From the sequence record MK250028.1: a DNA stretch of 64,000 bases. One strand, written 5' to 3'. The position numbers and the translations under genes are program-made. Under the pieces are notes generated by a model. The model did not search any database and had not been told where the DNA came from. It was given only the letters and a program-made list of their open reading frames with translations. Shown here piece by piece: positions 645 to 49,071 of this stretch (its first letter is position 1; each line of letters starts with the position of its first letter).

Positions 645-1586
645 TTAATCTGGTAAAACTTCAATATTTTTTAGCATTTTAAAGTCATTAATTTTATATT
701 TTAATGTAAACTTTATATTATTACCATTTCTAATAGAACCATTTCTATACATCCATAAGTAATTATAACTTTTACAATAAATGCCGGCTCCATTATTATA
801 TTTTTCACAACACATCAAACGTGTATGTTCTCTCAATGCAGTATCAGACCAAATAAATTCTACTTTATTACCTAAATTATCTTTTAATATAAAACTATAA
901 AACCCAAATACATTAAGTTTATTAACAATACCTTGATAATTATTTACTTGATACCTTACATATTCATCAGACATATCATATTTTTTATAAATATCTCTTA
1001 ATGAATTATTGTATATATTATTAAAGGTTTTCTGTTGTTCTATGTTATCTGTACATTTAATACAAATATTAAGATATACAAAATTTCCTTCGACTTTTGG
1101 TTCACCTACAGTTAATGAATAATTATACATTTTACATGCAGTTTCAGTAAGTTTTTCTAAGAAATGATTAAATGATATATCAGCATTTCCTCTATTCGTT
1201 GCTTTAATTTCTCTATTAGCAATTAATCTAGAACCATCAATAGAAACTGATGAACCATGATTTTCTACATAATTATTAAGTTTATCAAGTGATACGACAA
1301 CACTTAACTTAATAGTATGAGAAGATTCATTATATGATATTTCTTTATATGATTTGATATTACCATTTGTAATCATAACAGTTTCATCCGAAAACAAATC
1401 ATTTGTATCAATAGATGAACGAGATGATATATATGTACCATATGCTTCTGTTAATGCAAATCTTAATGCAGACATTGTTGCTTCTGATTTATTCTTACCA
1501 GTTCCCTCTGATACAATAGTAACATCATTTCCAAAACAACTAATTGTTATAATAGAAAGAAATAAAAATATAATAAATCTTCTCAT
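645..1586 (-). CDS. secreted/lipoprotein, LPP20/FlgT-N-like N-terminal domain (313 aa)
   Basis: N-terminal signal peptide (MRRFIIFLFLSIITISCFG); motif SEGTGKNKSEATMSALRFAL. Confidence 0.55.
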   Translation of the reverse strand: MRRFIIFLFLSIITISCFGNDVTIVSEGTGKNKSEATMSALRFALTEAYGTYISSRSSIDTNDLFSDETVMITNGNIKSYKEISYNESSHTIKLSVVVSLDKLNNYVENHGSSVSIDGSRLIANREIKATNRGNADISFNHFLEKLTETACKMYNYSLTVGEPKVEGNFVYLNICIKCTDNIEQQKTFNNIYNNSLRDIYKKYDMSDEYVRYQVNNYQGIVNKLNVFGFYSFILKDNLGNKVEFIWSDTALREHTRLMCCEKYNNGAGIYCKSYNYLWMYRNGSIRNGNNIKFTLKYKINDFKMLKNIEVLPD

Positions 1587-1593
1587 AATGAAT

Positions 1594-2139
1594 TTACTTT
1601 TTTAACTTAATATAATAAATGTAAACATTTGTATTTCGTTCAGTTATCTTCTTTAACATAGAAAGATTCCTAACTTCACCAATAGATGATTGAACTATTT
1701 CATCTGTAAACGTATAACTATCTGAATTATGCGAATTTTCATTCATATTCGTTGATGTTGATGCACTTATATCAGAATTACCCAAATCATTATTTCCATC
1801 AGAATTTTCTGTATAGAGATTTGATTCTGAATCTTCTACATTATATACAGAATAAGAACGGTTCCTAGCACCTTTTAGAAATTCAACGACTGAACGAGTT
1901 GCCTTCATATTAGCAATTCTATCAATGTATTCAGGATTCCTATTATTTGCAATTTTAATAATGGAAACAAGAACATTACCGTTTGATGTCTTATAAACAT
2001 TACATCCTGTTACACCATTTTCTATATATTCTGATACGACTTTATTACGAAGTTTTACTTTATTCTTTTCACTAATTGCTTGTGAAAAACTATTTGTATA
2101 CATAAAGATACAAATAAGGAAAGATAGAATATATTTCAT
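1594..2139 (-). CDS. secreted protein (181 aa)
   Basis: Signal peptide MKYILSFLICIFMYTNSFS; middle gene of a three-gene secreted cluster. Confidence 0.6.
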   Translation of the reverse strand: MKYILSFLICIFMYTNSFSQAISEKNKVKLRNKVVSEYIENGVTGCNVYKTSNGNVLVSIIKIANNRNPEYIDRIANMKATRSVVEFLKGARNRSYSVYNVEDSESNLYTENSDGNNDLGNSDISASTSTNMNENSHNSDSYTFTDEIVQSSIGEVRNLSMLKKITERNTNVYIYYIKLKK

Positions 2140-3325: not shown

Positions 3326-5230
3326 ATGGTAAGCAAGAAGAGTTTAGAAAGTAAGTATCAAAGTATGTCGGAATTAGATCATATCTTGAATAGATCAGGT
3401 ATGTATATAGGTTCCGTAAAGAATGAGAATAAGCAAATGTTTTTATATTCATCAGATGATGCAAAGATGAAATTAGTTGATGTTGAATATACACCAGCAT
3501 TGTTAAAGATGTTGGATGAGATTATATCAAATTCATGTGATGAGTATAGAAGAATAGATAATATGGGATTGACAGAAATGTCTGTTACCATTGATAAGCA
3601 TGGACGAGTAATCGTAAGAGATAATGGTGGTATTCCTGTTGTTAAACATAAGGAAGCAGGAATTTATATTCCTGAATTTATATTCTCACAACTAAGGACA
3701 AGTAGTAATTTTGATGATTCAGAAGATAGAGATGTAATAGGTACAAACGGTCTTGGTAGTAAAATTTGTAATATATTCTCTACGTTTTTTTCTATATATA
3801 CAGCAGATAAGAAACATTCATATTATAGATCATGGAAGAATAACATGCGAGAAATGAATGATGATTTACAAGTTAAGACCACGAAAGATCATTTTACAGA
3901 AAGTACATTTGACGTTGATTTTTCCAGATTTGAATGTGGTAATGAGTTCTCGGAAGATTTTATTAATATTATAGAAAAACGTTGTATTGATGCAGCTGCC
4001 GCTAATATAGGTTTAACTGTTCATTTTAAATATACAAATGGTAATGATGTTGTTAGAGAATCTGAATGGCATTTTCGTGCATTTGATGAGTATATTGATT
4101 TATTTTCTGATTATGTAGATACAGAACAAATGTTGAAGTTTTCTGATTCTATCATGCAAGTTTGGGTATTTCCTGATAATGGTATTAATGTTGGATTTGT
4201 GAATGGTGCTGAATGCTCAAGAGGAACACATATCAAAGCGGTTAGAAATGAAATTAATTCTGCTGTATCTGCATATCTTTTATCAAAAGAAAAAATTGAT
4301 ATTACACCAAAGAATGTAGATGGAAAATATTCAATGTTCTGTACATTCCATGTTAATAATCCGTCTTATGATTCACAGACAAAGGAATGTTTGACAACAG
4401 TAGTTGAAAGATTTTCAAATGATAATAAGTATACATTTAAGGTACCAGATTCATTTATTAAGTCTGTTTTGAAATCAGAGATTGTAGATATTGTAATAGA
4501 TTGGTATAAACAAAAATGTGAAGTAGAGGATCAAAAAACATTAAGAAAACTTAATAGACAAGCTAAAGCGAAAATTCGTAATAATGATAAATTCATTGAT
4601 GCAAATTCTAAAAGATCAGCTGATAGAGAGCTTTGGATATTCGAGGGTGATTCTGCACGCGCAGGATTTAGAGCAGCAAGAGACCCACAAACACAAGCAG
4701 CATATATGTTACGAGGAGTAATTCTTAATGTAATGGGACTTGCTCCAACAAAGATTATGGCAAATAAAGAGTTGTCTGATTTATTTAATATCATCGGTTT
4801 ACAATGGGGTGAACCTGTAGATGTGAAGAAATTGAATTTCAGTAAATTGGTTATAGCAACAGATGCTGATTTTGATGGTAGTAAAATCGCAGGTCTTCTT
4901 TTAACATTCTTTAATTTATGGCCAGAACTTTATGATGCAGGTTTAATTTGTAGATGTATTACACCTATTATTAAAGCTGTTAAAGGAAACGATGTTCAGA
5001 AATTTTATACGATGGATGAATTTAGGAAGAAAGAAAATTCATTGAAAGGATACAAGATAACATATTTAAAAGGTCTTGGTTCAAGTACGAATGAAGATTA
5101 TAAGGATATGATGAGAAATTCTGTTCTTCATTTCTTTAAGAAAGATGAACTTTCTGATATGACTATTAAAACATGGTTTGGAAAGGGTATTGCAAAAGAG
5201 AGAAAATCATTACTTAAGAATGAAGTTTAA
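3326..5230 (+). CDS. gp39/60: DNA topoisomerase II large (ATPase/TOPRIM) subunit, T4 gp39+gp60 fused type
   Basis: GHKL motifs (EIISNSCDE, DNGGIP, GTNGLGSK) and TOPRIM motifs (IFEGDSA, ATDADFDG, KGLGS). Confidence 0.95.
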   Translation: MVSKKSLESKYQSMSELDHILNRSGMYIGSVKNENKQMFLYSSDDAKMKLVDVEYTPALLKMLDEIISNSCDEYRRIDNMGLTEMSVTIDKHGRVIVRDNGGIPVVKHKEAGIYIPEFIFSQLRTSSNFDDSEDRDVIGTNGLGSKICNIFSTFFSIYTADKKHSYYRSWKNNMREMNDDLQVKTTKDHFTESTFDVDFSRFECGNEFSEDFINIIEKRCIDAAAANIGLTVHFKYTNGNDVVRESEWHFRAFDEYIDLFSDYVDTEQMLKFSDSIMQVWVFPDNGINVGFVNGAECSRGTHIKAVRNEINSAVSAYLLSKEKIDITPKNVDGKYSMFCTFHVNNPSYDSQTKECLTTVVERFSNDNKYTFKVPDSFIKSVLKSEIVDIVIDWYKQKCEVEDQKTLRKLNRQAKAKIRNNDKFIDANSKRSADRELWIFEGDSARAGFRAARDPQTQAAYMLRGVILNVMGLAPTKIMANKELSDLFNIIGLQWGEPVDVKKLNFSKLVIATDADFDGSKIAGLLLTFFNLWPELYDAGLICRCITPIIKAVKGNDVQKFYTMDEFRKKENSLKGYKITYLKGLGSSTNEDYKDMMRNSVLHFFKKDELSDMTIKTWFGKGIAKERKSLLKNEV

Positions 5231-5236
5231 TTATAT

Positions 5237-5278
5237 AATTCCATATGTTAATAAATTTTAAACATATGGAATTTTTTA
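5237..5278 (+). terminator. intrinsic terminator
   Basis: AATTCCATATG...CATATGGAATT hairpin followed by a T tract. Confidence 0.7.
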
Positions 5279-5293
5279 TTATATAATAATGTG

Positions 5294-5304
5294 TGTATCT
5301 TTGT
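5294..5304 (+). promoter_or_regulatory. TAnnTTTG promoter element
   Basis: TGTATCTTTGT about 33 nt upstream of 5337. Confidence 0.65.
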
Positions 5305-5336
5305 GATAATATATAAAATTAAATAAAAAATAAATT

Positions 5337-6281
5337 ATGAATAAAGAATTATTAAAAGAAAATATATCGGAATCCGTTAAAGATATATTAAAGAAATATA
5401 ATATTAGTGATATTAATGAATCAAATATATTAATATCTATAAATAATTGTATAGATAATATATTTGAAGGAATAGATATAGATCAAAGAAAACGACTTGT
5501 ATCATTTAATCCAAATCATCAGAATTATGTAGATACAAATGATCCATGGAATCCAAAACCTATATATAATGAAGTAGAAGGTTATAAGGTAATTTCAATA
5601 TTTAAACGTAAAGAAACTGAAGATAAACATGATGGAAATCCTGTTATATATGCACTTAAAGATATAAGAGGATGGAAATTTAAAAATCCATCATATGACA
5701 TATTTGCATTATTACGTAGATTTGTTTCAGTAACAAAAGAGCTTAAAGAAAATTTTGATGTTATTATTACCACACCATCTTCTAATAAATTAAATACCGA
5801 AGTTTTATATAGAATAAGGAGACTTATAAATCATGAAACATCATATGAGGATTTCTTTTATAAATATGGTGCTAATGATGTGTATGAAAATTTTCTTGAT
5901 ACTAATTATCTAGAAACACATTATAATGAAGATGAGCAGGAACATATACATGATTTATTATATGAAGCAATTTCTAATATGATGAAACCTAAAGAAAACA
6001 AAGGTAATGATGGTATTTTTTCTTATAAATTTATACCCCAACAAGAATTACGAAAATGTATTATAAAATCATTAGGCATTAATAAATTGTATAAAGATGA
6101 AATAACATATGGTAAGTATTTAAATGGTAAGAAAATACTGGTTATAGATGATACAGTCACATCGGGTAAAACCATATCTGATTCGGCGACAGCAATAAAA
6201 GATATGTATGATCCAGAATCTATAACATTTTTAACTTTATTTTCACCATTAGAACGAAATAAAAATAATTTAGAAAAATGA
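5337..6281 (+). CDS. phosphoribosyltransferase-fold protein, paralog 1
   Basis: PRPP-binding loop [18 protein letters not shown]; strongly similar to 9346..10272. Confidence 0.8.
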
Positions 6282-7156
6282 ATATTATAGATGGGAAATT
6301 AATATCAACTCAAATTAAAGAAGAAATAAAAAATGAAGTTGATAATATTATAAATAAAGGAGGACGACAACCACATCTTGTAGCAATAATAGTAGGTCAT
6401 GATGGAGGATCTGAAACATATGTACGAAATAAAGTTAAAGCTTGTGAAGCATGTGGATTTAAAAGTACAGTATACCAATATGAAGATAATATATCAGAAG
6501 AAGATTTAATTAATAAAATTATATTATTAAATAATAATCCGAATGTAGATGGTTTTATAGTTCAACTTCCATTACCTAAACATATTAATGAACAAAAAAT
6601 AATTGAAACAATTGATTATAAAAAGGATGTAGATGGTTTTCATCCAATTAATGTAGGACGATTAAATATAGGTTTACCTTGTTATATATCAGCTACGCCA
6701 AAAGGTATTTTTGAATTATTGAAAAGATATAATATTGAAACAAAAGGAAAACATTGTGTTATTATTGGACGTAGTAATATTGTTGGTAAACCTATGTCTA
6801 CATTGATGGTTCAAAAACAATATGGAGATTCAACAGTAACAGTATGCCATTCACATACTGAGAATTTAAAGGAAATAACAAAACATGCAGATATATTAAT
6901 TGTAGCTCTTGGTAAACCTGAATTTGTAACTGCAGATATGATAAAAGAAAATGCAGTTGTTATTGATGTTGGTACAACACGAATTCCTGATAATACAAAA
7001 AAGTCAGGATTTAGATTATGTGGAGATGTAAAATATAATGAAGTTGCACCGTTATGTAGTTATATTACACCTGTACCTGGAGGAGTCGGACCTATGACGA
7101 TTGCAATGCTTATGCAAAATACATTATCTGCGTATAAACATGAAATATATGATTAA
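6278..7156 (+). CDS. folD: bifunctional methylenetetrahydrofolate dehydrogenase/cyclohydrolase
   Basis: [47 protein letters not shown] motifs. Confidence 0.97.
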
Positions 7157-7175
7157 TTATTAAAATGAATAAATT

Positions 7176-7730
7176 ATGACTATTATATTTTCAAATATGT
7201 TAGATCCAGATTGTCAAGTTATTAGAAATGCATGGCAAGGATTAGATAATATACATCTTATAGAAATAACACCAGATATAGATGGTTATGAAGATATAGT
7301 TAATAATGCAATTATATCAGAAGATGATACTATATTATTTTTGGGACATGGTACAGCAAAAGGTTTATTATTTCCAAATTTTAATAAAGAAAAATATTTA
7401 TTACATGAATTTAATATAAATTTAGTTCATGCAAAAAATATAATATGTTGTTGGTGTTATGCATCAGATTTTGTAATTAATAATAACTTACATAATACAT
7501 TCTCAACATCTATGTTTATTTCTAATACAAATGAAGCAAATGATAATGGTATAGATAATTATACACAAAAACAAATTAATATAAATGGTGAGAGATTTTA
7601 TAGTAATATAAATCAATTATTGAAATATAATATACCATTGAATGAATGGGTAATGCAATTGGGTGCAAAGATGGATATTGAAAATGAAATAGATACATTT
7701 AATAGACAAGGATTATTTTATAAAGAATAA
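7176..7730 (+). CDS. hypothetical protein (184 aa)
   Basis: ORF track; contiguous with folD. Confidence 0.75.
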   Translation: MTIIFSNMLDPDCQVIRNAWQGLDNIHLIEITPDIDGYEDIVNNAIISEDDTILFLGHGTAKGLLFPNFNKEKYLLHEFNINLVHAKNIICCWCYASDFVINNNLHNTFSTSMFISNTNEANDNGIDNYTQKQININGERFYSNINQLLKYNIPLNEWVMQLGAKMDIENEIDTFNRQGLFYKE

Positions 7731-7765
7731 AAAAGGAAGATACAATAATAAGTATCTTCCTTTTT
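7730..7765. terminator. bidirectional terminator between convergent genes
   Basis: AAAAAGGAAGATAC...GTATCTTCCTTTTT hairpin. Confidence 0.75.
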
Positions 7766-7770
7766 ATATA

Positions 7771-9231
7771 TTAAATTAATTTACCTTTTATAATATCTTC
7801 TTTGATAATATTAAACAATTTTTCTCCAAAAGCATTTAAATCTTTAACAACACATGTATAAACTGCATCATCTGAATCTCTATAAGCATATGCATTATCA
7901 GATATATATTTGTTCCTATATGTATCAGATGGTGAAAGTTTTGTTAAATTAATTAATACATCAGATTTATTCATATCTGAACTTCCAGACTGTAAATAAC
8001 ATTGTATAATAAATTTACGCACATCGGTATTATAATATAATGATTTAATAGCTCCACTCCAATCATTATAATTAACATTAATTAATTTATCAGGATTATT
8101 CTTTAATATTTGCTTAATATTTTCTTTTACCCATTCAAAATAATTAGAAGGATTACTATCCATATTATATTTAATTAAAGTTTCTTCACTATGTTCTGCA
8201 TTTCCTGATTCATCTCCCGTTTGTTTATATTTAATATAAGGTTTAACGATATATAAAAATACTCCTTTTGAAAATAATTTTATTATATTAGGCTTATTTT
8301 CAAAATATCTACATGCAGTGAAATTATATTTAAATAAATTATTTCCATCAAATTTTTCATTGAAATCACGTCGTCTTGCATCTGGTGCGAATGACGCAGC
8401 TTCATTATGAATAAAACAATCATATGAATTTTCCTTTATATCAATAGTTAAATATTGATAAAATGTATCCCAACCTCTTTTTCTAGTGCCTACATTTTCA
8501 TAAATTTCAAATAATACATCATTTGTACTTTTAAATAATTTATTAAAATTAACAATATCATTTTGAAGTAAACTGATAAGTTTATCAAAGTTCTATCCAG
8601 ATTTTCTAACTAAACTATTTACATATTTTTCAATATCTACTTCACATTTATCAAATGCTTTGTTATAACTACCAACAAAACTGGTTTTTAAATCATTGCT
8701 ATCATATAATGATACAGGTATATGTTGTATAAGTGAATCTAGTATTGTAATATATTTTTTATTAATAGGTGAACGTTTAGCACGTGGTTTTGAAACATTA
8801 GGAGTTGAAATTACAGGTTCAGTTACACGTGTTTTTCTAGAAACCGGTTGTTTTTGTACAGGTTCAGATGAAATACCCATATTAATATTATATAGCTATT
8901 GAATTTCTTCTATAGTTCCACCCAAATCTAATATTCTGTGTCCAAATAATTTGAATACTTTAATTTTATCTATATCTCTTTCACTTTTTGGACATGGTTT
9001 TTTCATAATAATTAAAGCTGCAACATATCTGTTAAGTAAATCATCCTTAGTAAGTTTCTTCATAGGTTTTACCAACTCACATTCAGTAGCTTTATTTCTT
9101 GAACAAACTGACGCAACACTTAACCATAATTTCCTATCTAATGTTCTATGGTCAATACGTTTTGCCATTTCATTTAATGATTTCTTTAAACTATATGATA
9201 TACCATTCATTAATTCTTTATATAATGACAT
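7771..9231 (-). CDS. TAG-recoded hypothetical protein (486 aa, 2 in-frame TAG)
   Basis: Track fragments 8896..9231, 8593..8880 and 7771..8163 share one frame, separated only by TAG at 8896 and 8593; N-terminal about 115 aa paralogous to 39811..41436. Confidence 0.85.
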
Positions 9232-9307
9232 TGTGTTTAATATTAAAACTTTTTATATTTATTTGTTTTAATAGTAAAGACTTTATGTTTCCTAATTAAT
9301 AAAATAA

Positions 9308-9320
9308 ATGTATCTTTGTA
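9308..9320 (+). promoter_or_regulatory. TAnnTTTG promoter element
   Basis: ATGTATCTTTGTA upstream of 9346. Confidence 0.65.
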
Positions 9321-9345
9321 TATAAATTAAAAATAATAGTTAGTT

Positions 9346-10272
9346 ATGACTAAAGATGAATTGAAAAATATTGTTTCCTCTGTTATGAGTGAAACTTTAA
9401 AAAAATATAATATTAATGAAATTGAAACAAATAATATGTTATTTTCATTAAATGAATATATGGATAATCATATGTTTGAAGGAATAGATGTAGATGATGA
9501 AAATCATATTGTTTCATTTAATCCTAATCATCAAGAATATGTAGATACAAATGATCATTGGAATCCAAAACCTATATATAATGAAATAAATGGTTATAAG
9601 GTAATATCTATATTCAAACGAAAGGATACAGAAAATAATTTAGACGGTAATCCTTTAATTTATGCATTAAAAGGTCATAAATGGAAGTTTAAGAATCCAT
9701 CATATGATATATTCGCGTTATTACGTAGATTCGTTGCAGTAACAAAAGAACTTAAAGAAACATATGATGTAATTATAACAACACCATCATCTAATAAATT
9801 AAATACTGAAGTATTATATAAAGTTAGAAGGTTGATAAAACATGAAACTTCATATGAAGATTTCTTTATGAAGAATGATGCTATTTATGTATATGAAGAA
9901 TTATTGGATAATAATTGGATTGAAAAACATTATAATGAAAAAGATGCAAAACGAATAGATACTGAAATATATAGGGCTATTTGTCGCATACAAAAATCAA
10001 AAGATAACGGAGGTAATGATGGTGTTTTTTCATATAAGTTTATACGAAATAAAGATGTAAGAAATGCAATAATTCAATCCATGAGTATAAATGATATGTA
10101 TAAAGATGAAATAACATATGGTAAGTATTTAAATGGAAAGAAAATATTGGTTATAGATGATACAGTTACATCTGGTAAGACTATATCTGATTCTGCTGAA
10201 GCAATTATTGAAACATATGCACCAGAATCTATAACATTCCTAACTTTATTTTCACCTTTAATGTCTGAATAA
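9346..10272 (+). CDS. phosphoribosyltransferase-fold protein, paralog 2
   Basis: [18 protein letters not shown]; long identical blocks with 5337..6281. Confidence 0.8.
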   Translation: MTKDELKNIVSSVMSETLKKYNINEIETNNMLFSLNEYMDNHMFEGIDVDDENHIVSFNPNHQEYVDTNDHWNPKPIYNEINGYKVISIFKRKDTENNLDGNPLIYALKGHKWKFKNPSYDIFALLRRFVAVTKELKETYDVIITTPSSNKLNTEVLYKVRRLIKHETSYEDFFMKNDAIYVYEELLDNNWIEKHYNEKDAKRIDTEIYRAICRIQKSKDNGGNDGVFSYKFIRNKDVRNAIIQSMSINDMYKDEITYGKYLNGKKILVIDDTVTSGKTISDSAEAIIETYAPESITFLTLFSPLMSE

Positions 10273-10274
10273 TT

Positions 10275-11147
10275 ATGAAGAAATTATTTAATTTAAATAA
10301 TAATATTTGTGACCAAATATTAAATGAAGCACAAATACATTTTACAAAGAATTGTTCAAATAAATGTCCATTTTGTATAGATGCATTTAATAACGGTGTT
10401 GGAAATTCAAAACCTGATATTGATAAGATATTTTTATCAGTTTTAAATATAAAAGATAAAATTGATGAAATTGCAGTGTCTGGGGGCGAACCTATGCTTT
10501 ATATAGAAGACTTACTTAAGTTGGTAAAGAATATAAAAAGATTTGCTAAATTACCGGTTACTGTAATTACATCAATGCCTATACCATGCTGGACAGAAAA
10601 GGAAACATTCTTTGAAATTATAAAAGTGATAGATCATTTAATCATATCACCACAACATTACGATCAAGAAGTTGGTGACAAAATAAGACATAGTGTTTCA
10701 CTTTATAATAGAGATAGATTATTTGAAGAAATTCCATATAAGAATAAAGTTTCATTAACACTAAATGCTATTAAAGGATATTTAGATTCAAAAGAAGATT
10801 TTATTGATAATATTAAACATTTTGAAAAATTAGGGTATTCTCATTTTAAGTTAGCAGAAATGTTTGAACATGATGAACTTTATGTTTCATTAGAGGATAT
10901 ATTTGGATTTAAATTACCTAAACCATTCGCTTATGGTTGTAGTAATAAACATTTTGATTTATCACCATATTTAGGATATAAATCAAATTCAGATTTTACA
11001 ATAAAAAGATGTTGTTTTTATAAAACACATAAACAACATGCATCAATAAATGATTTATTGAAAATACTAATAAGACCATTATTTTCAAAGAAATATTTCT
11101 TTTGTATAATATATGAAAATGGTGAAATTGTTCAGAGATGGTCATAA
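10275..11147 (+). CDS. radical SAM protein
   Basis: CxxxCxxC (CSNKCPFC) and SGGEP motif. Confidence 0.88.
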   Translation: MKKLFNLNNNICDQILNEAQIHFTKNCSNKCPFCIDAFNNGVGNSKPDIDKIFLSVLNIKDKIDEIAVSGGEPMLYIEDLLKLVKNIKRFAKLPVTVITSMPIPCWTEKETFFEIIKVIDHLIISPQHYDQEVGDKIRHSVSLYNRDRLFEEIPYKNKVSLTLNAIKGYLDSKEDFIDNIKHFEKLGYSHFKLAEMFEHDELYVSLEDIFGFKLPKPFAYGCSNKHFDLSPYLGYKSNSDFTIKRCCFYKTHKQHASINDLLKILIRPLFSKKYFFCIIYENGEIVQRWS

Positions 11148-11165
11148 AATTAAATAAAAATAAAA

Positions 11166-11666
11166 ATGGATTATAAAAATATTATAGATACAATAACAAA
11201 ATATGTAGGTGATTATATAGCATCCCATGCAAATAGAAATGAATTACTTACAAGTTATGATTCTGTTAATAAGATAGATGAAGCTATAAAGAATATAGAT
11301 AATACTCTTAATTCTATAGATGATTCTGAATTATCAGAAAAACTTAAAGATTATAAACAAAAGAAGGAGGAAGAAAAACGAACTATAATGAATGACCTCA
11401 TGTATAAAATATTACCAAAACAACCGGTAATTGATATGGATGATTATGTTAGAATACAAGATAATAAAGGAGAACATTTAATTCTTAAAAATGTTGATGA
11501 TTCTTTTATAGATCCTTTATTTCCTTCAAAAATAACGGCAGTTAAACAAAAGGAAAAGAAGAAAACTGTTACAAAAACAGCAAGAGAATATTATGATGAT
11601 TATTCATCAGGAGGATGTGGTAATACATATGGTTCTCCATATCATCATTGGAGTGGTGGATGTTAA
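11166..11666 (+). CDS. hypothetical protein (166 aa)
   Basis: ORF track; coiled-coil-like middle, C-terminal GGC repeats. Confidence 0.7.
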   Translation: MDYKNIIDTITKYVGDYIASHANRNELLTSYDSVNKIDEAIKNIDNTLNSIDDSELSEKLKDYKQKKEEEKRTIMNDLMYKILPKQPVIDMDDYVRIQDNKGEHLILKNVDDSFIDPLFPSKITAVKQKEKKKTVTKTAREYYDDYSSGGCGNTYGSPYHHWSGGC

Positions 11667-11698
11667 AAAATATAAAGTTTTAATATATAAAGATTATT

Positions 11699-12640
11699 AT
11701 GTCAAAAGAAGAAATAATTAATAGTTTTCCAGAACCATTATATGGTTATAATTTATCTAAAGATAAAGTTATAGAACTAATAGAGTTATGTATGAATTCT
11801 AAATCAGCTAATATATTAAATAATATTTTAACTGATTTTATTAATAAAAATGTTTCACATATTGATTTTATAATTAGGGAAGATGATATAGATACCGGTA
11901 TTTTAAGTAAAAAAGATATTGATAGTAATTTAAAATTCGATCAATTTATGGCATGGTATTATGGTTTTTCTGATTATAATAAAATCATGTATGATAAGTA
12001 TTCAGATTATTTAAAAGATAAACATGTTATTGCACCTAAATATTGTGTAAAAGATTGGTTTAATGATGTAATAAAGTATTATAAAGAGCAACATCAACCA
12101 ATTCATACGTTATATGATGCATGTAAAATTGCTGCTGATATGCTTTATAAAGATGTATTCAATGAAGAATATCAAAGTATGAGGACGTCATATCATAATG
12201 ATCAAACATTGATGTGTCAAGCATTAGGATCATATCTTAAACAGAAATATATGTATAAAGTAAGTGTTTCTCAAAAGAAATTGTTCTATAAGGAAACAAT
12301 GAGATGCCTTATGTTTCCACGATATTTTGGTTATAATAATGATTATCTTTCATATATATTTAAAAAAGGAAAGTATCCTCGTAAAACAAAGAAATTTCTT
12401 AATAATCCAAATAGTCATAATATTTCTGGCAAAAATAGATTTAATAAAATTAGAAGAAATAAAACACATATGAATATTAGGAAATTATATTCTGATTATG
12501 GTCCTCAAATGGATTTATATCATATATTTAAAAATTCAGGTATTCCTGAAGAAATAACAAATAAGATTTGTCCTTGGAAAGAATATGTATCTATAAACAT
12601 CGATGATATGTCAGTTAATGTAAACGGAACATTTTATTAA
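11699..12640 (+). CDS. hypothetical protein (313 aa)
   Basis: ORF track. Confidence 0.75.
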   Translation: MSKEEIINSFPEPLYGYNLSKDKVIELIELCMNSKSANILNNILTDFINKNVSHIDFIIREDDIDTGILSKKDIDSNLKFDQFMAWYYGFSDYNKIMYDKYSDYLKDKHVIAPKYCVKDWFNDVIKYYKEQHQPIHTLYDACKIAADMLYKDVFNEEYQSMRTSYHNDQTLMCQALGSYLKQKYMYKVSVSQKKLFYKETMRCLMFPRYFGYNNDYLSYIFKKGKYPRKTKKFLNNPNSHNISGKNRFNKIRRNKTHMNIRKLYSDYGPQMDLYHIFKNSGIPEEITNKICPWKEYVSINIDDMSVNVNGTFY

Positions 12641-41905: not shown

Positions 41906-42259
41906 ATGAAAAGAATTATTAATATAAGACCATTATCAGAAAATACAATAAGGAAATCTTTTGGTGCTTCATTAGAAGATAAACTGAGAGAATTAAGAGA
42001 TGAAGTAAATGATAGTAGATTACTTGAAGATACTTTAGTATTTCAGATAGGAAGAGAAGTATATACAGATAATGGTACAAGATATAAATTATTGGGAGGT
42101 CATCTATCATACCAGGAAATGGGATTAACATAGATGGACCAACAGTTATATAGTAATATTGTTTCCGGTAAAACTGATGTTGATACAGTGCTATATAACT
42201 GGAAGAATAAAAAGGTTAAAAAATTGAACTTTTCTTCAAGAAAAATATAGAAAAAGTAA
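41906..42259 (+). CDS. TAG-recoded hypothetical protein (117 aa, 2 TAG)
   Basis: Track fragment 41906..42133 extends through TAG to TAA 42259. Confidence 0.7.
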
Positions 42260-42261
42260 AA

Positions 42262-42306
42262 TAAAATGGTGAATATTTAACATAAAATTAAATATTCACC
42301 ATTTTT
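42262..42306. terminator. bidirectional terminator
   Basis: AAAATGGTGAATATTTAA...TTAAATATTCACCATTTT. Confidence 0.75.
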
Positions 42307-42308
42307 TA

Positions 42309-42716
42309 TTAATATGTAGATAATTCTTGTGTAAATGTACTTAATGCATCATCTATAGATGAAAACTCTCCAAATGATACTTCTGTATCAGGATCAGAAA
42401 ATACTTCAAATTCGAAATCTATTTTATCAACAGGACCAACGGCTAATGTATATGTTCCATTATTATTCTATTGAATAGTTAAATGACTATTTTCTCCTCC
42501 ACAAAAATCATCGAATTTCTATTGTAAATTATAATTATTTGCAAATATTCTCAATAATGATTCTGGTTCTCTATGTGTACCTTTTGAACCTCTCATAATT
42601 CTAACTTCAGATGAATTAAAATATGATAAAATTATTTTCTTTAAATTATTTAAAGACATAGGTATATTAGAGTTTTCATTAAGCGCTCTTTTTACTGTTT
42701 TTGAAACAGATTTCAT
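42309..42716 (-). CDS. TAG-recoded hypothetical protein (135 aa, 2 TAG); upstream leader broken by TAA
   Basis: Open from ATG 42716 to TAA 42309 with TAG read-through; an upstream in-frame ATG at 42755 is followed by TAA at codon 5. Confidence 0.7.
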
Positions 42717-42838: not shown

Positions 42839-43315
42839 TCAAAATAGTGCTTCACATTTATTCTCTTTTATCGGACACCAATTCTCAAAATCCCATTTGA
42901 AAAAATCTGCGCAAACGAGATTATTGTTTAATATTGATTTTGCTGTATCAACATTATAATCTATATTAAGTTTAGATAACATTTCTAATATTCGTCCATG
43001 TGTTTCTATAACATTATCTTGCATTAGTTCTGTTCCGTATGTATGTTCTAATGCTTGTTTCCATGTTGAACCATGTTGTATCTTATTATATATTATATAG
43101 ATAACGAAATTTCCATTTCCGAATGATGGCTCTAAGAAATTTGATTCTGTATTATTCCACTGATCTTCTGAAACTTTATCAGACATACGCTTAATTAATT
43201 CAAACGGTGTAAAAAACTCCTGGGAACCTGCTGATCCCTTTCTTCGGGAAACTCTCTCTTCCGTTGCATAACTATCTAAACACAAAAACTATTCTATATC
43301 AAAACTACTATTCAT
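42839..43315 (-). CDS. DNA adenine methyltransferase, SAM-binding (motif X/I) half (158 aa, 1 TAG)
   Basis: QEFFTP, FLEPSFGNGNF, YGTELMQDNV, CADFF; no NPPY; ATG 43315 with TAG at codon 9. Confidence 0.8.
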
Positions 43316-43329
43316 ATTACATTAATTAA

Positions 43330-43644
43330 TCATTTCAATGTATTTAAAACACGTTCAACAAGATTTTTTATATATACTTTATCTGTATTATATAAAAAAC
43401 AATGTGTATAATGTTGTAATTCTGGATCCTCGTTATCCCAATATGCAATACCAGACATACCTCCAAACTTTGGACAATTTAAGTGATATAGAGAAAATGT
43501 ATCTGGAATATTATTCCAATATGTACATATATTATAATTTGGATAACTTTCTTTATATTCATCAAAATCTAAATCAGAAAGTTCTAAATTATATATATTA
43601 TCTGTATTACCTTCTTGATAATATAAATATAGATATTTTTCCAT
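43330..43644 (-). CDS. hypothetical protein (104 aa)
   Basis: ORF track. Confidence 0.65.
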   Translation of the reverse strand: MEKYLYLYYQEGNTDNIYNLELSDLDFDEYKESYPNYNICTYWNNIPDTFSLYHLNCPKFGGMSGIAYWDNEDPELQHYTHCFLYNTDKVYIKNLVERVLNTLK

Positions 43645-43702
43645 AATTAAATTATATTTATTTATTATTTATATAATTAATAACTTAAATTGTTTATCGT
43701 AT

Positions 43703-43778
43703 TAGACGTTATATATTATTTGATGGAAAGAAATATGATAAATGTAATGAAATAACATTAGCTAGTAATGATTCTTTA
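43703..43778 (+). repeat. left 76-bp inverted repeat of the invertible cassette
   Basis: Base-by-base identical to the reverse complement of 44927-45002. Confidence 0.97.
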
Positions 43779-44375
43779 CTTAATTCTTTTATTGAAAAAA
43801 CAAATATAGATAAATTAACAAATAAATTAAGTGATTATATTAAAGTAACAAATAATGGTAAAGCATATACATATGCTCCACATGTAAAATTTCCATCAAA
43901 TAAATATATTTGTAGAATTAAAGCATTTAGCGGGCATTCGAATACCCGCTCTAAATTGATAGGTGAGTTCTATAATTTATTTTCAAATAAAGAAAAATAT
44001 ACAGATGTTTGTGGTATTGCAGATAAATTAAATAGTAAAATAAGTAGAAATGGTAATCAATATGTTCAATATTTTATTGAATTTGATAATGAAAATGAAT
44101 TACAAAATTTTTGGAAATATACGCATACATTATTTGTTAGTACATGTATATATTGTTTTAAGAAAAATTTACATTTAGATGATGATACATTAACACATAT
44201 TCCATGGGTTGATTTTAATAATAAAATATTTAGTAAGACAATAGAAGATATTGATATATATTTGTTTGACAAATATAATATATTAAATAATATTGTTAAT
44301 CATATATTAAAAATTGTACCAAACTATTATAGTTTAGATTTAAATAAATATAAAAATATAAAGGTAGAGAATTAA
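43704..44375 (+). other. silent alternative methyltransferase C-terminal (specificity) cassette
   Basis: Open frame RRYILFDGKKYDKCNEITLASNDSL + 198 aa; in-frame TAA at 43686 and no ATG before the repeat; homologous to the C-terminus of 44372..45724. Confidence 0.85.
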
Positions 44376-44386
44376 TCTCTACCTTT
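44360..44386. terminator. palindromic hairpin centred on the shared TTAA stop of both cassettes
   Basis: AAAGGTAGAGA-ATTAA-TCTCTACCTTT, 11-bp arms. Confidence 0.65.
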
Positions 44387-45724
44387 TCTTATATTATAAT
44401 AATCCGGAAGTATTTCTTCAATATGCGTCCTTATTTCCTGAGATATGTGATATTTCTTAAATAAATAATCATCTATTTCAGAAGGTGATTTATTAAATAT
44501 ATCATCAGAAAAATCAAAATAAGGAATACATTTACACTCTCCTCTCCCTAATTCATATGACGTTTGAATTAAATATAAGCAAATTCTACAAAAATCAGTT
44601 TGTATATAATTATTAAGATTTTTAACATCTTGTTTATTATTAAAAGGTATATAATATTTTAAAAATTGATTTCCTTTTTCTACTTTATTTTTTATATCTT
44701 TAAATTTATATATACATAAATTATTTCGAGAATTAATGCACCAATTAGTATGTTTACCATCCGGATGTACACTAAATCTTGTAATTCTAAAAATCCACCA
44801 ATTATCATCTGGGTTATATTCAACTGGTGCATTACCGAATACGTGTACATTTGGTATACTTTTTATATGATTTTGTAAATTATCATTTAAATATAATGGT
44901 TCAACAATATTTTTAAATTCTGTTAATAAAGAATCATTACTAGCTAATGTTATTTCATTACATTTATCATATTTCTTTCCATCAAATAATATATAACGTC
45001 TATTATGATGAGCACTATTATTCTGTTGAATAAAATGATTTATTGTTATTCGTCCTGCAATAGCTGCATCAAAATATTCATTACCATCAACTGTTTCAAT
45101 TTCTACAAAATCACAATTATCCACATTATTTGTAATTTTTTTATTTTGACTTTTTGTAATTAACCAATTAGATGGCTGTATACTTACTATTTCATTTGCA
45201 ATATTAAAAAAATTATAAAGCATTTTTTTACCAATATTTCCATATGGTGGATTTGCAAGTATTACATCAAATTTTTTATTCTTTTCAATTATCTTATTCA
45301 CTTCATATTCATAACTATTTTTATTCTCATCGAAATTAAGCATTCTAAAATTTTTAATTTCAATTCCATTATTTTGTATTACATAATATTCATATATATC
45401 TTCCCAATACGTTTTCGTTACATCATTACCACAAATAATAAGTATATCCACATTATTATCTATTAATTTATCAAAAATATCTAAATTATCAATAGAATTT
45501 TCTAAGTTACCAATTTTTGGTAAAGGACATGGATTATCATATAATATACCATTATATTCGTAACCAATCTCATTTTCTTTATCAGAGTATACACGTTCAA
45601 ATGTTCCTAATAAATTTGTAGTGTTACCAAATATAACAATATTATGAATATTATTAATATCCTTAATATATTGCTTAATATTTATTGTTTTATTTGTAAA
45701 CTTATATATTTTATTTTGTTTCAT
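44372..45724 (-). CDS. DNA adenine methyltransferase, catalytic NPPY + specificity subunit (450 aa)
   Basis: KFDVILANPPYG motif IV, IQPSNWL; C-terminal 184 aa lie inside the invertible segment. Confidence 0.85.
   Translation of the reverse strand: MKQNKIYKFTNKTINIKQYIKDINNIHNIVIFGNTTNLLGTFERVYSDKENEIGYEYNGILYDNPCPLPKIGNLENSIDNLDIFDKLIDNNVDILIICGNDVTKTYWEDIYEYYVIQNNGIEIKNFRMLNFDENKNSYEYEVNKIIEKNKKFDVILANPPYGNIGKKMLYNFFNIANEIVSIQPSNWLITKSQNKKITNNVDNCDFVEIETVDGNEYFDAAIAGRITINHFIQQNNSAHHNRRYILFDGKKYDKCNEITLASNDSLLTEFKNIVEPLYLNDNLQNHIKSIPNVHVFGNAPVEYNPDDNWWIFRITRFSVHPDGKHTNWCINSRNNLCIYKFKDIKNKVEKGNQFLKYYIPFNNKQDVKNLNNYIQTDFCRICLYLIQTSYELGRGECKCIPYFDFSDDIFNKSPSEIDDYLFKKYHISQEIRTHIEEILPDYYNIRKGRD
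44927..45002 (-). repeat. right 76-bp inverted repeat, inside the MTase coding sequence
   Basis: Encodes RRYILFDGKKYDKCNEITLASNDSL of 44372..45724. Confidence 0.97.
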
Positions 45725-45753
45725 AATAAATGTCTTTATATATTAATTATTAT

Positions 45754-45766
45754 TACAAAGATACAT
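45754..45766 (-). promoter_or_regulatory. TAnnTTTG promoter element upstream of the MTase
   Basis: ATGTATCTTTGTA about 30 nt upstream of ATG 45724. Confidence 0.65.
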
Positions 45767-45793
45767 ATATTATTTTAAATATAAAAATAGAAT

Positions 45794-45991
45794 TTAATCT
45801 AAATTAATTAAATCATTTATTTTTTGAATAATTTCATAAATAATTCCATCTGATTTATTAATTTTTATTGTATTAATATCAATAAATTTTGTACATTTAT
45901 TTAATATATCAGCACGTTTCAACCATTTACTTACATCTTTGTCTGTACCAAACCAACAAATAAATGTATTTACTTTTTCTAAATTAAACAA
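45794..45991 (-). CDS. possible small hypothetical protein (start uncertain)
   Basis: ORF track with TTG start; upstream frame closed by TAA. Confidence 0.35.
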   Translation of the reverse strand: MFNLEKVNTFICWFGTDKDVSKWLKRADILNKCTKFIDINTIKINKSDGIIYEIIQKINDLINLD

Positions 45992-47127: not shown

Positions 47128-49071
47128 TCAACCTTTAATATTTTGTATAATCTTATCCCGTTCTTCTTTCGTTATTATAACAACATATTCTTTATTGGAA
47201 CCAAAATGAGATCTGTTTGTCAACGTTTCTTTTATATATGGCACATATTTTGTAATCAAATCATCTGTCACAAACAAATATTTCTGACAATCATAATTCT
47301 TAAGACAAATATCTATCCATCCGTCACATCCTCTGTTAACAGACTCTACTCCAGGCCAATTTTCAATATTTCCATATGGCGAACATGTCAACAAACATTG
47401 GTATTTACCAGTATTCTTACAACAATCTGCAATTCCTAAATCACATGTAACGTTAACTAATAAATCAGAATCAATTATAGGTTTCAAAAACTTATATATC
47501 TCCTTACTTTCCTTAACACTTGATTCACATAAATCTCTACCTATATATGATTTATTACATGCCAATGTTCCTATCATTCTTCCACTATATCCCGAGAACG
47601 GATCAAATATTGTATCAAATTCATTAAGATATTTCTTTATAAGATATTTTGCTAAATCCGGTTTGAAATATGTAACAGTCTGAAACATCCTAGATGCATT
47701 CAATCCAATTCCATATATAAAATCAGGAACATAACATAAATCAATATATTTCCTATGCTCTTCTGATTTATACCAATCAGCAAATTTCAATCTATTACAT
47801 AATAACTTCCTGAATAATTCCTTATCATTTTTAATCATATTCCATCCATCAAAAGGTGAAACACTATTTTCAATATGTGCATATATAATAGACTTATGAA
47901 ACATCTTAATAATCTTGGATGGTGTCTTCAAATTCCTATCCTTTGATTTTATATATTCAAATTCCTTGATACAATCTAATTCTGTAACAGGATGAACAGT
48001 AGAAGGTGGGAAATATATATTCTGAATTTTTTCAAACTCTCTATCTAAATACTTATCGACAATCTCATTAACATGTGCGGATGTAGCATTAGCGCTCTTA
48101 CACATATTTTCTTCTGTCTCTTCTTCACCGTTAATCAATACAGGTTTGTATTTAGGCTTACTTAATAAATCAGATATAGGTGTATTCTTATCAACTATTT
48201 TTTCTTTTTTCTTTTCTGATTTAATATCTAAACTATTTGTCTCAGTCTTAATAGGAAATACATCATTGATACTTGATGTTTTTTTCGTTTCCTTATCCTT
48301 ATTATGAATTGATTTCTTTAATTTCTCCTGCTTTTCTTTTTCTATATCAATCTTATCTTGTTTCTCAATAATCTCATTTATATTATCATCAACAGTATAC
48401 TTAATCAATAGTGTCGGAATATATTTAAATCTTGGAGCCTTACTGGAACAACTTGTTGAACAATATTTAGTATACAACTTTGTATTCTTACCAACCCAAA
48501 TAACAGGTTTTCCACATACGGGACATGTAGGTTTTTCTTCTACGCCTTTCCTTATTCGTTGAACAGTTTCCAATATAGATGCAGAATCTTTATATCTATT
48601 ATTAAGATAATCCAATATGTACTTATTAGTAATCAATGGAACATATTTATCATATATGATATGATTCTTAATAATATAATCATTCATTTCATCTAATTCA
48701 GTAATTGAATTCTGCCAATCTACGAATTTTGAATCCCTGTGTTTAGCAATCTCAAAACTATCCTTGTATTTTTCACGAGTCATAGAAGCATGCATCGCTT
48801 TACATATATAAGATCCACATGTAGTTTTGTATCCGTTTCCTATACGTCCACTCCATACTGCTTTCTTACTGCAATACTTACATGTTACTATCTCATGCAA
48901 ATCATGAATAACATAATAAAGTCTCTCTAATATATCTTCATCATTCTTTAAAAAATCTGTAAACTCATATACTTCTTTATTAATATCTTCATGATTTCTA
49001 ACTATATATATTAATTGTCTTAAACTTATTTCATTATTATTATATTGCTTTATATAATCATTTAATTGCAT
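47128..49071 (-). CDS. DNA methyltransferase-like protein with two N-terminal Cys-rich Zn modules (647 aa)
   Basis: IFDPFSGYSGRMIG motif I, YIGRDL, LLTCSPYG motif IV-like; N-terminal CKYC...CGSYIC and CPVCG...CSTSC. Confidence 0.7.
   Translation of the reverse strand: MQLNDYIKQYNNNEISLRQLIYIVRNHEDINKEVYEFTDFLKNDEDILERLYYVIHDLHEIVTCKYCSKKAVWSGRIGNGYKTTCGSYICKAMHASMTREKYKDSFEIAKHRDSKFVDWQNSITELDEMNDYIIKNHIIYDKYVPLITNKYILDYLNNRYKDSASILETVQRIRKGVEEKPTCPVCGKPVIWVGKNTKLYTKYCSTSCSSKAPRFKYIPTLLIKYTVDDNINEIIEKQDKIDIEKEKQEKLKKSIHNKDKETKKTSSINDVFPIKTETNSLDIKSEKKKEKIVDKNTPISDLLSKPKYKPVLINGEEETEENMCKSANATSAHVNEIVDKYLDREFEKIQNIYFPPSTVHPVTELDCIKEFEYIKSKDRNLKTPSKIIKMFHKSIIYAHIENSVSPFDGWNMIKNDKELFRKLLCNRLKFADWYKSEEHRKYIDLCYVPDFIYGIGLNASRMFQTVTYFKPDLAKYLIKKYLNEFDTIFDPFSGYSGRMIGTLACNKSYIGRDLCESSVKESKEIYKFLKPIIDSDLLVNVTCDLGIADCCKNTGKYQCLLTCSPYGNIENWPGVESVNRGCDGWIDICLKNYDCQKYLFVTDDLITKYVPYIKETLTNRSHFGSNKEYVVIITKEERDKIIQNIKG

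Follow-up and report, generated by a model that had tools for sequence, protein, structure and literature searches.

Organization of the Methyltransferase Locus

We analyzed a 64,000-nucleotide stretch of sequence record MK250028.1 (hereafter the window), which is Prevotella phage Lak-B9 or a near-identical genome. The window contains a DNA methyltransferase gene on the minus strand, whose 3' part lies in a 1.3-kb segment flanked by inverted repeats. The features of the locus are as follows.

45794..45991, minus strand: remnant (65 codons) of a 286-aa nuclease-like gene, next to a 3,043-bp deletion scar at about 45980.
45003..45724, minus strand: constant 5' part of the methyltransferase gene (codons 1-240), with an N-terminal alpha/beta region and motif IV NPPY (residues 158-161), through the end of the catalytic domain.
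44927..45002, minus strand: right inverted-repeat arm, which encodes residues 241-266 (..RRYILFDGKKYDKCNEITLASNDSL), the linker at the start of the target-recognition domain (TRD).
44372..44926, minus strand: cassette A, the TRD expressed in this window (184 codons plus stop).
44360..44386, no strand assigned: bidirectional terminator-like hairpin (11-bp stem, 5-nt loop), which travels with the invertible segment.
43779..44375, plus strand: cassette B, the silent, start-less alternative TRD (198 codons plus stop).
43703..43778, plus strand: left inverted-repeat arm.
43330..43644, minus strand: 104-aa ORF of unknown function, between the switch and the downstream subunit gene.
42839..43315, minus strand: 158-aa subunit (one in-frame TAG read as Q), the probable SAM-binding half of a split enzyme, outside the invertible segment.

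Bases 43703-43778 are 100% reverse-complementary to 44927-45002 over 76 nt. With imperfect outer ends, the repeat is 88 nt at 95% (43691-43778 / 44927-45014). It is the only long inverted repeat in the window: the next longest exact one is 18 nt, and the maxima in 20 Markov-simulated windows were 16-26 nt. The minus-strand ORF 44372..45724 begins with ATG and encodes 450 aa, whereas the plus-strand frame 43689..44375 is open for 228 codons without a start codon. The 198 codons after the repeat are homologous to the expressed 184-codon C-terminus (39% identity including the repeat, E 9e-41).

The two stop codons overlap as TTAA at 44372-44375. An earlier note on this sequence had placed them inside an 11-bp palindrome. 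However, the TTAA lies in the 5-nt loop of an 11-bp-stem hairpin, which scores as an intrinsic terminator on both strands (3 sites found against 0.3 expected; fold energy −15 kcal/mol, z −4.6 to −4.8). The other observations of the note, namely the exact repeats, the homologous start-less frame and the in-frame 464-aa protein that inversion would give, were confirmed. The note also stated that the window has no recombinase gene; we found none at the locus itself, although the rest of the window was not searched as such.

Predicted Structure of the Methyltransferase

Sequence searches against Pfam, PADLOC and PDB gave only sub-threshold methyltransferase hits for the 450-aa protein (Pfam Eco57I, 16.8 against a cut-off of 25.3 bits) and nothing for cassette B. 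An AlphaFold (AF2) model was then calculated (pLDDT 85, pTM 0.80). Residues 1-261 align with the MTase domains of DrdV, LlaGI and HsdM at Z 13.5-14.2. Residues 7-409 align with M.TaqI 21-413 (Z 13.4) and residues 5-450 with LlaBIII 865-1523 (Z 13.8), and M.BseCI and CamA give Z of about 13. Cassette A aligns with the C-terminal recognition domains of M.TaqI, M.BseCI, CamA and LlaBIII. The model thus supports the swapped part being the TRD, with the right arm at the boundary between the two domains.

Motifs X and I (SAM binding) are not found upstream of motif IV in the same chain. The canonical motif X (FFTP) and motif I (EPSFGNGNF) are in the separate 158-aa protein. This protein matches phrog_21201 DNA methyltransferase (2e-17) and positions 288-381 of phrog_11371, whose positions 2-117 match the NPPY module; fused relatives have the order IV-VIII, TRD, X, I-III. 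The gene pair is conserved in an unrelated contig (53% identity), the complex prediction score was 0.74 against a best control of 0.00, and the 158-aa gene shows 92-94% nucleotide identity across Lak-A, -B and -C. The enzyme is therefore most likely a two-gene split of a permuted methyltransferase, cut where the TRD ends, so that the SAM-binding half is encoded outside the switch and every inversion state is functional. However, the AF2 monomer model folds the protein's own N-terminus as the first half of the Rossmann fold, whereas the complex model puts the separate subunit there, and which half is used is unresolved. The 104-aa ORF had no Pfam or PHROG match.

Orientation of the Segment in Related Genomes

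To explore whether the segment inverts, we compared the window with public assemblies. The predicted 464-aa isoform is present in the public protein collection: one protein (P0131) is 464/464 identical to it and another (P0127) is 463/464. Cassette B is expressed as the C-terminus of these two and of a third 464-aa protein (P0002). In three ENA contigs, L020, L021 and L022 (ERZ26859200, ERZ26858444, ERZ26858509), the flanks are 100% (4,701 nt) and 99.97% (7,454 nt) identical to the window, and the 1,148-nt interior is inverted with 0-1 mismatches. Genomes in the orientation of the window (the A state) occur in the same accession series (ERZ26858465, ERZ26858363, ERZ26859172). The constant 5' part of the gene is collinear in every assembly.

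Two further relatives, L017 and L018, are about 96% identical to each other and about 95% to the window, lack the 104-aa ORF, and differ by the same inversion. Lak-A genomes have a nested three-cassette version that is rearranged between strains; one of them (L026) is Lak-A2 with both the outer (108-nt repeat) and inner (64-nt repeat) segments inverted, at 99.5-100% identity per segment. The centre of the segment is also reversed between Lak-B9 and Lak-C1/A2 (80-83% reversed against 65-70% forward). Thus, at least two independent flips occurred in Lak-B, plus a nested double flip in Lak-A. A search of IMG/VR with the 450-aa protein found nothing, and a 35-nt repeat pattern found nothing among viral contigs and only one Lak-B contig, in the A state, among metagenome contigs.

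The two arms stay identical within each genome while they differ between lineages. There are three different repeat alleles, and in L017 and L018 the arms are identical over 83 nt. In a wastewater relative, the repeat unitig has twice the depth of its neighbours. dN/dS was 0.10-0.17 for cassette A and 0.21-0.28 for cassette B, with no indels, which indicates purifying selection on both cassettes.

Recombination Genes

No recombinase match was found in G001 (249 kb), and the full Lak-B9 record was therefore searched. It contains no Phage_integrase match, one RecA-like gene, and one Resolvase-domain gene that sits 79 kb away, directly upstream of a 449-aa ORF without a Pfam match. We read this pair as IS607-like (transposase-like) from its layout only, because no transposase domain was detected. 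By eye, the repeat did not appear to fit the Bacteroides Mpi-type consensus, and that stretch is not conserved between lineages.

A Gene-Altering Inversion in a Lytic Megaphage

These results are best explained, with fairly high confidence, by a gene-altering inversion switch in a lytic megaphage. Recombination between the two 76-nt arms (83 nt in relatives) inverts the 1.3-kb segment, and whichever cassette faces the constant 5' part of the gene becomes the C-terminus of the N6-adenine (NPPY) methyltransferase. This gives a 450-aa A form or a 464-aa B form, and the other cassette is silent because it has no start codon. The central claim of the earlier note is supported by natural alleles and not only by sequence anatomy. 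However, every assembly shows a single orientation, and the Logan k=31 contigs from 22 runs, in which no joints were reported, cannot span the repeat. It is inferred rather than observed that flipping is frequent enough to give mixed progeny, that the two forms methylate different motifs, and that inversion runs on general homologous recombination (phage RecA-like protein or host). The suggestion of the note that the switch protects progeny against different host restriction systems likewise remains a hypothesis.

It is possible, though only tentatively, that the switch retargets a phage-borne restriction-modification enzyme (helicase, nuclease, methyltransferase and TRD, like Type ISP/IIG) rather than a protective orphan methyltransferase, the copy in the window being a degraded remnant. 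In Lak-C1, the homologous module ends a 1446-aa protein that matches PADLOC REase_MTase_IIG (1e-84) and Pfam ResIII, and the Lak-A-like L026 has a comparable 1423-aa ResIII ORF that runs off the locus. In sister Lak-B genomes, a 587-aa SF2 helicase and the 286-aa PD-(D/E)XK-like gene lie directly upstream, and the window has lost them through the 3,043-bp deletion, whose junction is not explained by microhomology. However, the Lak-B helicase and the 286-aa protein show no BLASTP similarity to the Lak-C1 fusion, and the nuclease assignment is only a lead (Z at most 5.6, model pLDDT 66). In the window, only the methyltransferase genes remain, and they are intact.

It is more doubtful that the same switch is catalyzed by a site-specific recombinase acting in trans, such as the IS607-like serine recombinase of the phage or a Prevotella invertase. 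Known hsdS, PglX and tail-fibre inversions use dedicated tyrosine or serine invertases (PMC7672463, PMC9881135), Lak-B9 encodes one Resolvase-domain protein, and Bacteroidales hosts probably encode many invertases. However, that gene is distant and no Phage_integrase match exists in the genome. In addition, the arms are homogenized over their whole 76-83 nt, and the repeat sequence differs between lineages by up to about 6 substitutions, a pattern that fits homology-driven exchange better than a conserved core site.

It is unlikely that the inversion is only a rare rearrangement, by illegitimate or homologous recombination, that became fixed in different strains. In favour of this view, each assembly has a single orientation, no read-level heterogeneity could be shown with the k=31 contigs, no adjacent invertase was found, and the four Lak-B genomes of Devoto et al., the IMG/VR record and one ENA contig are all in the A state. 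However, flips separate genomes with 0-1 substitutions in 13 kb, the events in Lak-B were at least two and a double event occurred in Lak-A at 98-100% identity, the arms are homogenized within genomes, and the silent cassette stays open and under purifying selection. All of this argues for inversion much faster than point mutation.

Finally, it is very unlikely that the flipped contigs, which are SPAdes-style NODE contigs, are assembly artefacts: although orientation across a 76-nt repeat depends on read or pair support in short-read assemblers, the k=31 graph is identical for both orientations, and Logan contigs and contig L022 break exactly at the repeat, the contigs run through the repeat at 60-1800x coverage, which needs read or pair support, both orientations recur in different lineages and assembly pipelines, the Lak-A rearrangement needs two nested inversions, and concerted evolution and selection on the silent cassette are independent of assembly.

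Comparison with Known Systems

Milman, Yelin and Kishony (2023, PMC9881135) have described gene-altering programmed inversions of Type II/IIG-like methyltransferases in bacteria (Eco57I-domain proteins, Cj0031 homologues, BREX PglX, DISARM class 1). As in those cases, long inverted repeats (44 bp or more) lie inside the coding sequence, a start-less convergent cassette replaces the specificity part of a single-chain NPPY methyltransferase, and the orientation varies between closely related genomes. However, the present locus is in the genome of a lytic 550-kb phage and not in a bacterial defence island, no invertase is adjacent, the enzyme appears to be a permuted split, and the family has no Pfam model over threshold.

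In Type I hsdS epigenetic invertons (S. pneumoniae SpnIII/cod, B. fragilis, Mycoplasma pulmonis; PMC7672463, PMC7641763, PMC4948785), inversion between repeats in conserved coding segments also swaps TRDs and so changes methylation specificity, and the repeats are of comparable length (15-333 bp in SpnIII). Here, no HsdS, HsdM or HsdR architecture is present, with no HsdS or HsdM family match over threshold, the TRD is part of the methyltransferase chain, and no locus-encoded tyrosine invertase is present.

In the invertible tail-fibre segments of phages Mu (G/Gin) and P1 (C/Cin), a phage-encoded inversion exchanges alternative C-termini behind a constant N-terminal part and gives mixed progeny. 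Those systems switch host-receptor binding and use an adjacent serine invertase, 26-bp sites and an enhancer, whereas here the target is a DNA methyltransferase, the repeat is 76-83 nt and no Resolvase match was found near the locus.

The predicted fold resembles M.TaqI, M.BseCI, CamA and the MTase-TRD part of the Type ISP enzymes LlaGI/LlaBIII (Z 12.5-14, 280-335 residues aligned), with an N6-adenine NPPY catalytic domain followed by a C-terminal DNA-recognition domain. However, sequence identity is only 10-15%, and the 450-aa protein has neither the motor nor the nuclease of a Type ISP or helicase-containing Type IIG fusion.

Implications for Lak Megaphages

Phase-variable methyltransferase specificity is known as a bacterial strategy, used for defence (Type I, BREX, DISARM, Type IIG) and for epigenetic regulation. 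We found no report of a phage using the same device: the Lak papers that we searched mention neither methyltransferases nor inversions, and wider literature searches found only bacterial cases. The locus also gives a clean natural example of the design in which a protein is split at the end of its variable domain and the C-terminus is then inverted. It further suggests that a 76-83-nt repeat without a dedicated invertase can sustain reversible switching in a phage that encodes its own RecA-like protein. In practice, the 1.3-kb segment is a marker whose orientation should be scored in Lak genomes, and a caution for assemblies that report only one state.

It is about as likely as not that Lak megaphages run a recombinase-less, homology-driven epigenetic phase-variation system of their own, a two-state switch in Lak-B and a nested three-cassette shufflon in Lak-A, the shufflon sitting on a Type ISP/IIG-like helicase-methyltransferase fusion. 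A single burst would then contain progeny with different methylation (and, in some clades, restriction) specificities, and this would be phage-side bet-hedging against the phase-variable restriction systems of Prevotella and other Bacteroidales hosts. If the two isoforms protect against different host restriction enzymes, the switch would help explain how uncultured megaphages persist on hosts whose own restriction specificities vary.

Sequence Organization of the Locus

The 3.5 kb around the locus is 100% identical to Prevotella phage Lak-B1, B3, B6 and B9, and the coordinates equal those of Lak-B9 (MK250028.1, 550,053 bp, baboon faeces). GC content is 20-36%. Lak phages read TAG as glutamine and, in line with this, the neighbouring 158-aa gene and the genome's recombinase genes carry in-frame TAGs. 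However, the methyltransferase and both cassettes contain no TAG, so their reading does not depend on the code.

The features of the locus and its surroundings are as follows.

43703..43778: left arm of the inverted repeat
44927..45002: right arm, exact reverse complement of the left arm, codons 241-266 of the methyltransferase ORF
44372..45724 (-): 450-aa ORF with NPPY at residues 158-161
43689..44375 (+): frame open for 228 codons with no start codon
44360..44386: hairpin with an 11-bp stem, with the overlapping stops (TTAA) in its loop
43330..43644 (-): 104-aa ORF without any family match
45794..45991 (-): remnant ORF next to a deletion scar at ~45980
47128..49071 (-): 647-aa ORF with CxxC zinc-ribbon-like pairs
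42243..42325: inverted repeat with 38-nt arms and a 7-nt spacer

With imperfect outer ends, the arms are 88 nt at 95%, and identity drops to background immediately outside them. We searched for further inverted repeats and found that the next longest exact one within 10 kb anywhere in the window is 18 nt, while 20 simulated windows gave maxima of 16-26 nt. After the repeat, the plus-strand frame (cassette B) encodes 198 residues homologous to the 184 expressed by the minus-strand ORF (cassette A), with an E-value of 9e-41 over 212 aligned residues including the repeat. Only these two cassettes exist in the Lak-B9 genome. The hairpin looks like an intrinsic terminator on both strands. The inverted repeat at 42243-42325, between convergent genes ending at 42259 (+) and 42309 (-), is probably another bidirectional terminator.

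The 104-aa ORF is present in Lak-B9-like genomes, but it is replaced by 13 bp in the 95%-identical relatives L017 (ERZ15610110, 550,050 bp) and L018 (ERZ28641866), in which the called subunit gene (181 aa) starts 5 nt inside the outer end of the repeat arm. A 50-90-nt AT-rich intergenic element lies upstream of the methyltransferase start (~45694-45797) and upstream of the 104-aa ORF (~43620-43690). It recurs many times in the genome, with more than 25 further copies in record G001 (249 kb) at 73-90% identity, and may be a Lak promoter or regulatory repeat. By eye, the C-terminal part of the 647-aa ORF has DPFSGYSG and SPYG motifs, which suggests a second DNA methyltransferase, although only weak Pfam hits (Lar_restr_allev, Zn_ribbon) were found.

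Predicted Structure of the Swapped Domain

To explore what the invertible part encodes, an AlphaFold2 model of the methyltransferase was built on 54 homologues (mean pLDDT 85, pTM 0.80). Residues 1-261 align with the methyltransferase domains of DrdV, LlaGI and HsdM (Z 13.5-14.2). The whole chain aligns with enzymes that have a catalytic domain followed by a C-terminal recognition domain, namely M.TaqI 21-413 (Z 13.4, 282 residues), LlaBIII 865-1523 (Z 13.8), and M.BseCI and CamA (Z about 13, 325-337 residues). Thus, in this model, the repeat encodes the linker at the domain boundary, and the invertible part is the whole target-recognition domain (TRD). In the family alignment, the segment encoded by the repeat and the last 90 or so residues are conserved, and the core between them is variable. 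The same pattern appears as depth peaks at the repeat and the tail in a metagenome with many variants.

Occurrence of the Flipped State in Public Assemblies

A protein search returned a 464-aa protein (P0002) made of the constant part plus cassette B. Among its cluster members, protein P0131 is 464/464 identical to the isoform predicted by inverting the window, and protein P0127 is 463/464. Their contigs are L020 (ERZ26859200, 99.6 kb), L021 (ERZ26858444, 550,082 bp, about 1800x coverage) and L022 (ERZ26858509). We found that these contigs are 100% identical to the window over 4,701 nt on one side and 99.97% over 7,454 nt on the other, and that the 1,148-nt interior is present as the reverse complement with 0-1 mismatches. 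This evidence for flipping comes from assemblies. Genomes in the A state, that is, the orientation of the window, occur in the same ENA accession series. The A-state contig L029 and the B-state contig L021 differ in the flanks by one substitution and two 1-nt gaps in 5.2 kb, plus the inversion. L017 and L018 are about 95% identical to the window, and their interiors are 96.3% identical to each other only as reverse complements. On any tree of these four genomes, at least two inversion events are needed.

The conserved 158-aa gene led to the homologous loci of Lak-A2 and Lak-C1, both of which have an expressed cassette and a convergent silent cassette. Lak-A2 (MK250019.1 492784-505426, locus L013, positions 6708-9568) has a third silent cassette that begins at motif IV, an outer 108-nt repeat (95%) and an inner 64-nt repeat (83%). 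A 434-kb Lak-A-like scaffold (L026, ERZ28640776 scaffold_2, locus positions 3968-6828) has the same pieces in another arrangement. The pieces between the outer and inner repeats are reversed and exchanged (99.9% and 100%), the inner piece is in the original orientation (99.5%), and the flanks are collinear (98-99%). That arrangement is the product of an outer plus an inner inversion, so that a different cassette ends the giant ORF of about 1420-1450 aa. The centre of the segment is also reversed between Lak-B9 and Lak-C1/A2 (80-83% reversed against 65-70% forward).

Signs of Exchange between the Arms and of Selection on the Cassettes

The repeat differs between lineages, by 2 substitutions between the window and L017 and by about 6 between L017 and L018. 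However, within L017 and within L018 the arms are identical over 83 nt, and in the window they are identical over 76 nt, with two mismatches in the outer 7 nt. In a wastewater relative, the repeat forms one 83-nt unitig at depth 227, against 120 for its neighbours, which means two identical copies. Both cassettes keep their lengths and show dN/dS of 0.10-0.28 between lineages, whether they were assembled as expressed or silent, although the counts are small (8-24 synonymous and 8-15 non-synonymous differences). These are signs of ongoing exchange and selection.

Recombination Genes

The genes around the locus show no recombinase domain, and the whole Lak-B9 record has no Phage_integrase match. 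The only serine recombinase found in the genome is a 201-aa protein with a Resolvase catalytic domain after a 58-residue N-terminal extension, followed directly by a 449-aa ORF without any Pfam match (MK250028.1 514.8-516.8 kb; 1327..1932 and 1982..3331 of L003). Both have in-frame TAGs. We read this pair, which lies 79 kb from the switch, as IS607-like from its layout only. The record also has one RecA-like gene, and RecA/RadA is listed among conserved Lak functions (PMC8346664). Homogenisation of the full arm length, together with lineage-specific repeat sequences, fits homology-driven exchange better than a conserved crossover site. However, we consider this explanation only about as likely as not, because a trans-acting phage or host invertase is not excluded.

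A Probable Split Enzyme

The 158-aa protein downstream carries FFTP and EPSFGNGNF (motifs X and I). It matches positions 288-381 of phrog_11371, while the NPPY module matches positions 2-117 and cassette B matches positions 190-243 of the same profile. Fused relatives therefore have the order IV-VIII, TRD, X, I-III. An unrelated contig has a 303-aa module gene followed by a 176-aa homologue of the subunit (53% identity).

A complex prediction scored 0.74 (runs 0.71-0.76) against a best control of 0.00. The three runs agreed in at least 74% of contacts, and the partner's pLDDT was at least 77; that mark was reached by 51 of 78 solved complexes and 2 of 108 mismatched pairs. In the predicted complex, the subunit's first strand (SNFLEPS) lies against the strand before NPPY (residues 152-156), as in an intact Rossmann fold. 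This result supports binding but does not show it, and it conflicts in part with the monomer model, which uses the protein's own N-terminus for that half.

Relation to Known Inversions and Genomic Context

Inversions of hsdS (PMC7672463, PMC7641763) and of Eco57I-like, Cj0031-like, PglX and DISARM methyltransferases (PMC9881135) are described for bacteria, and invertible tail fibres are described for phages. The Lak papers and the phage-methylome and jumbo-phage papers that we searched mention neither methyltransferase inversions nor this locus. Thus, the kind of inversion is already known, and what appears to be new is its occurrence in a methyltransferase gene of a phage.

Compared with its sister genomes at least 99.9% identical (L020, L021, L029) and with Lak-B4, the window lacks 3,043 bp upstream of the gene, and there is no microhomology at the junction. 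The missing piece encodes a 155-aa ORF, a 587-aa SF2 helicase and most of a 286-aa protein. The 286-aa protein has invariant D/E/QxK residues, and its fold matches are weak but uniformly to PD-(D/E)XK nucleases, including the Mrr domain of LlaBIII (Z 5.5).

In Lak-C1 (MK250029.1, locus L014), the ORF 7989..12329 (-) encodes 1446 aa with 29 in-frame TAGs and matches the PADLOC Type IIG restriction-methyltransferase model REase_MTase_IIG (1e-84) and Pfam ResIII. Its last 310 or so residues are the homologue of the window's NPPY + TRD module. In other Lak genomes the switch may thus retarget a restriction-modification enzyme, while in this window only the methyltransferase genes remain. Lak-B4 (MK250023.1, locus L002, 3861..5252 (-)) has the same N-terminal 160 residues as the window's methyltransferase, but an unrelated 300-aa C-terminus, no inverted repeats and no 104-aa ORF; this is a third, non-invertible allele at the same locus. 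Lak-B2, B5, B7 and B8 lack the gene. The locus is therefore a hot spot of variation.
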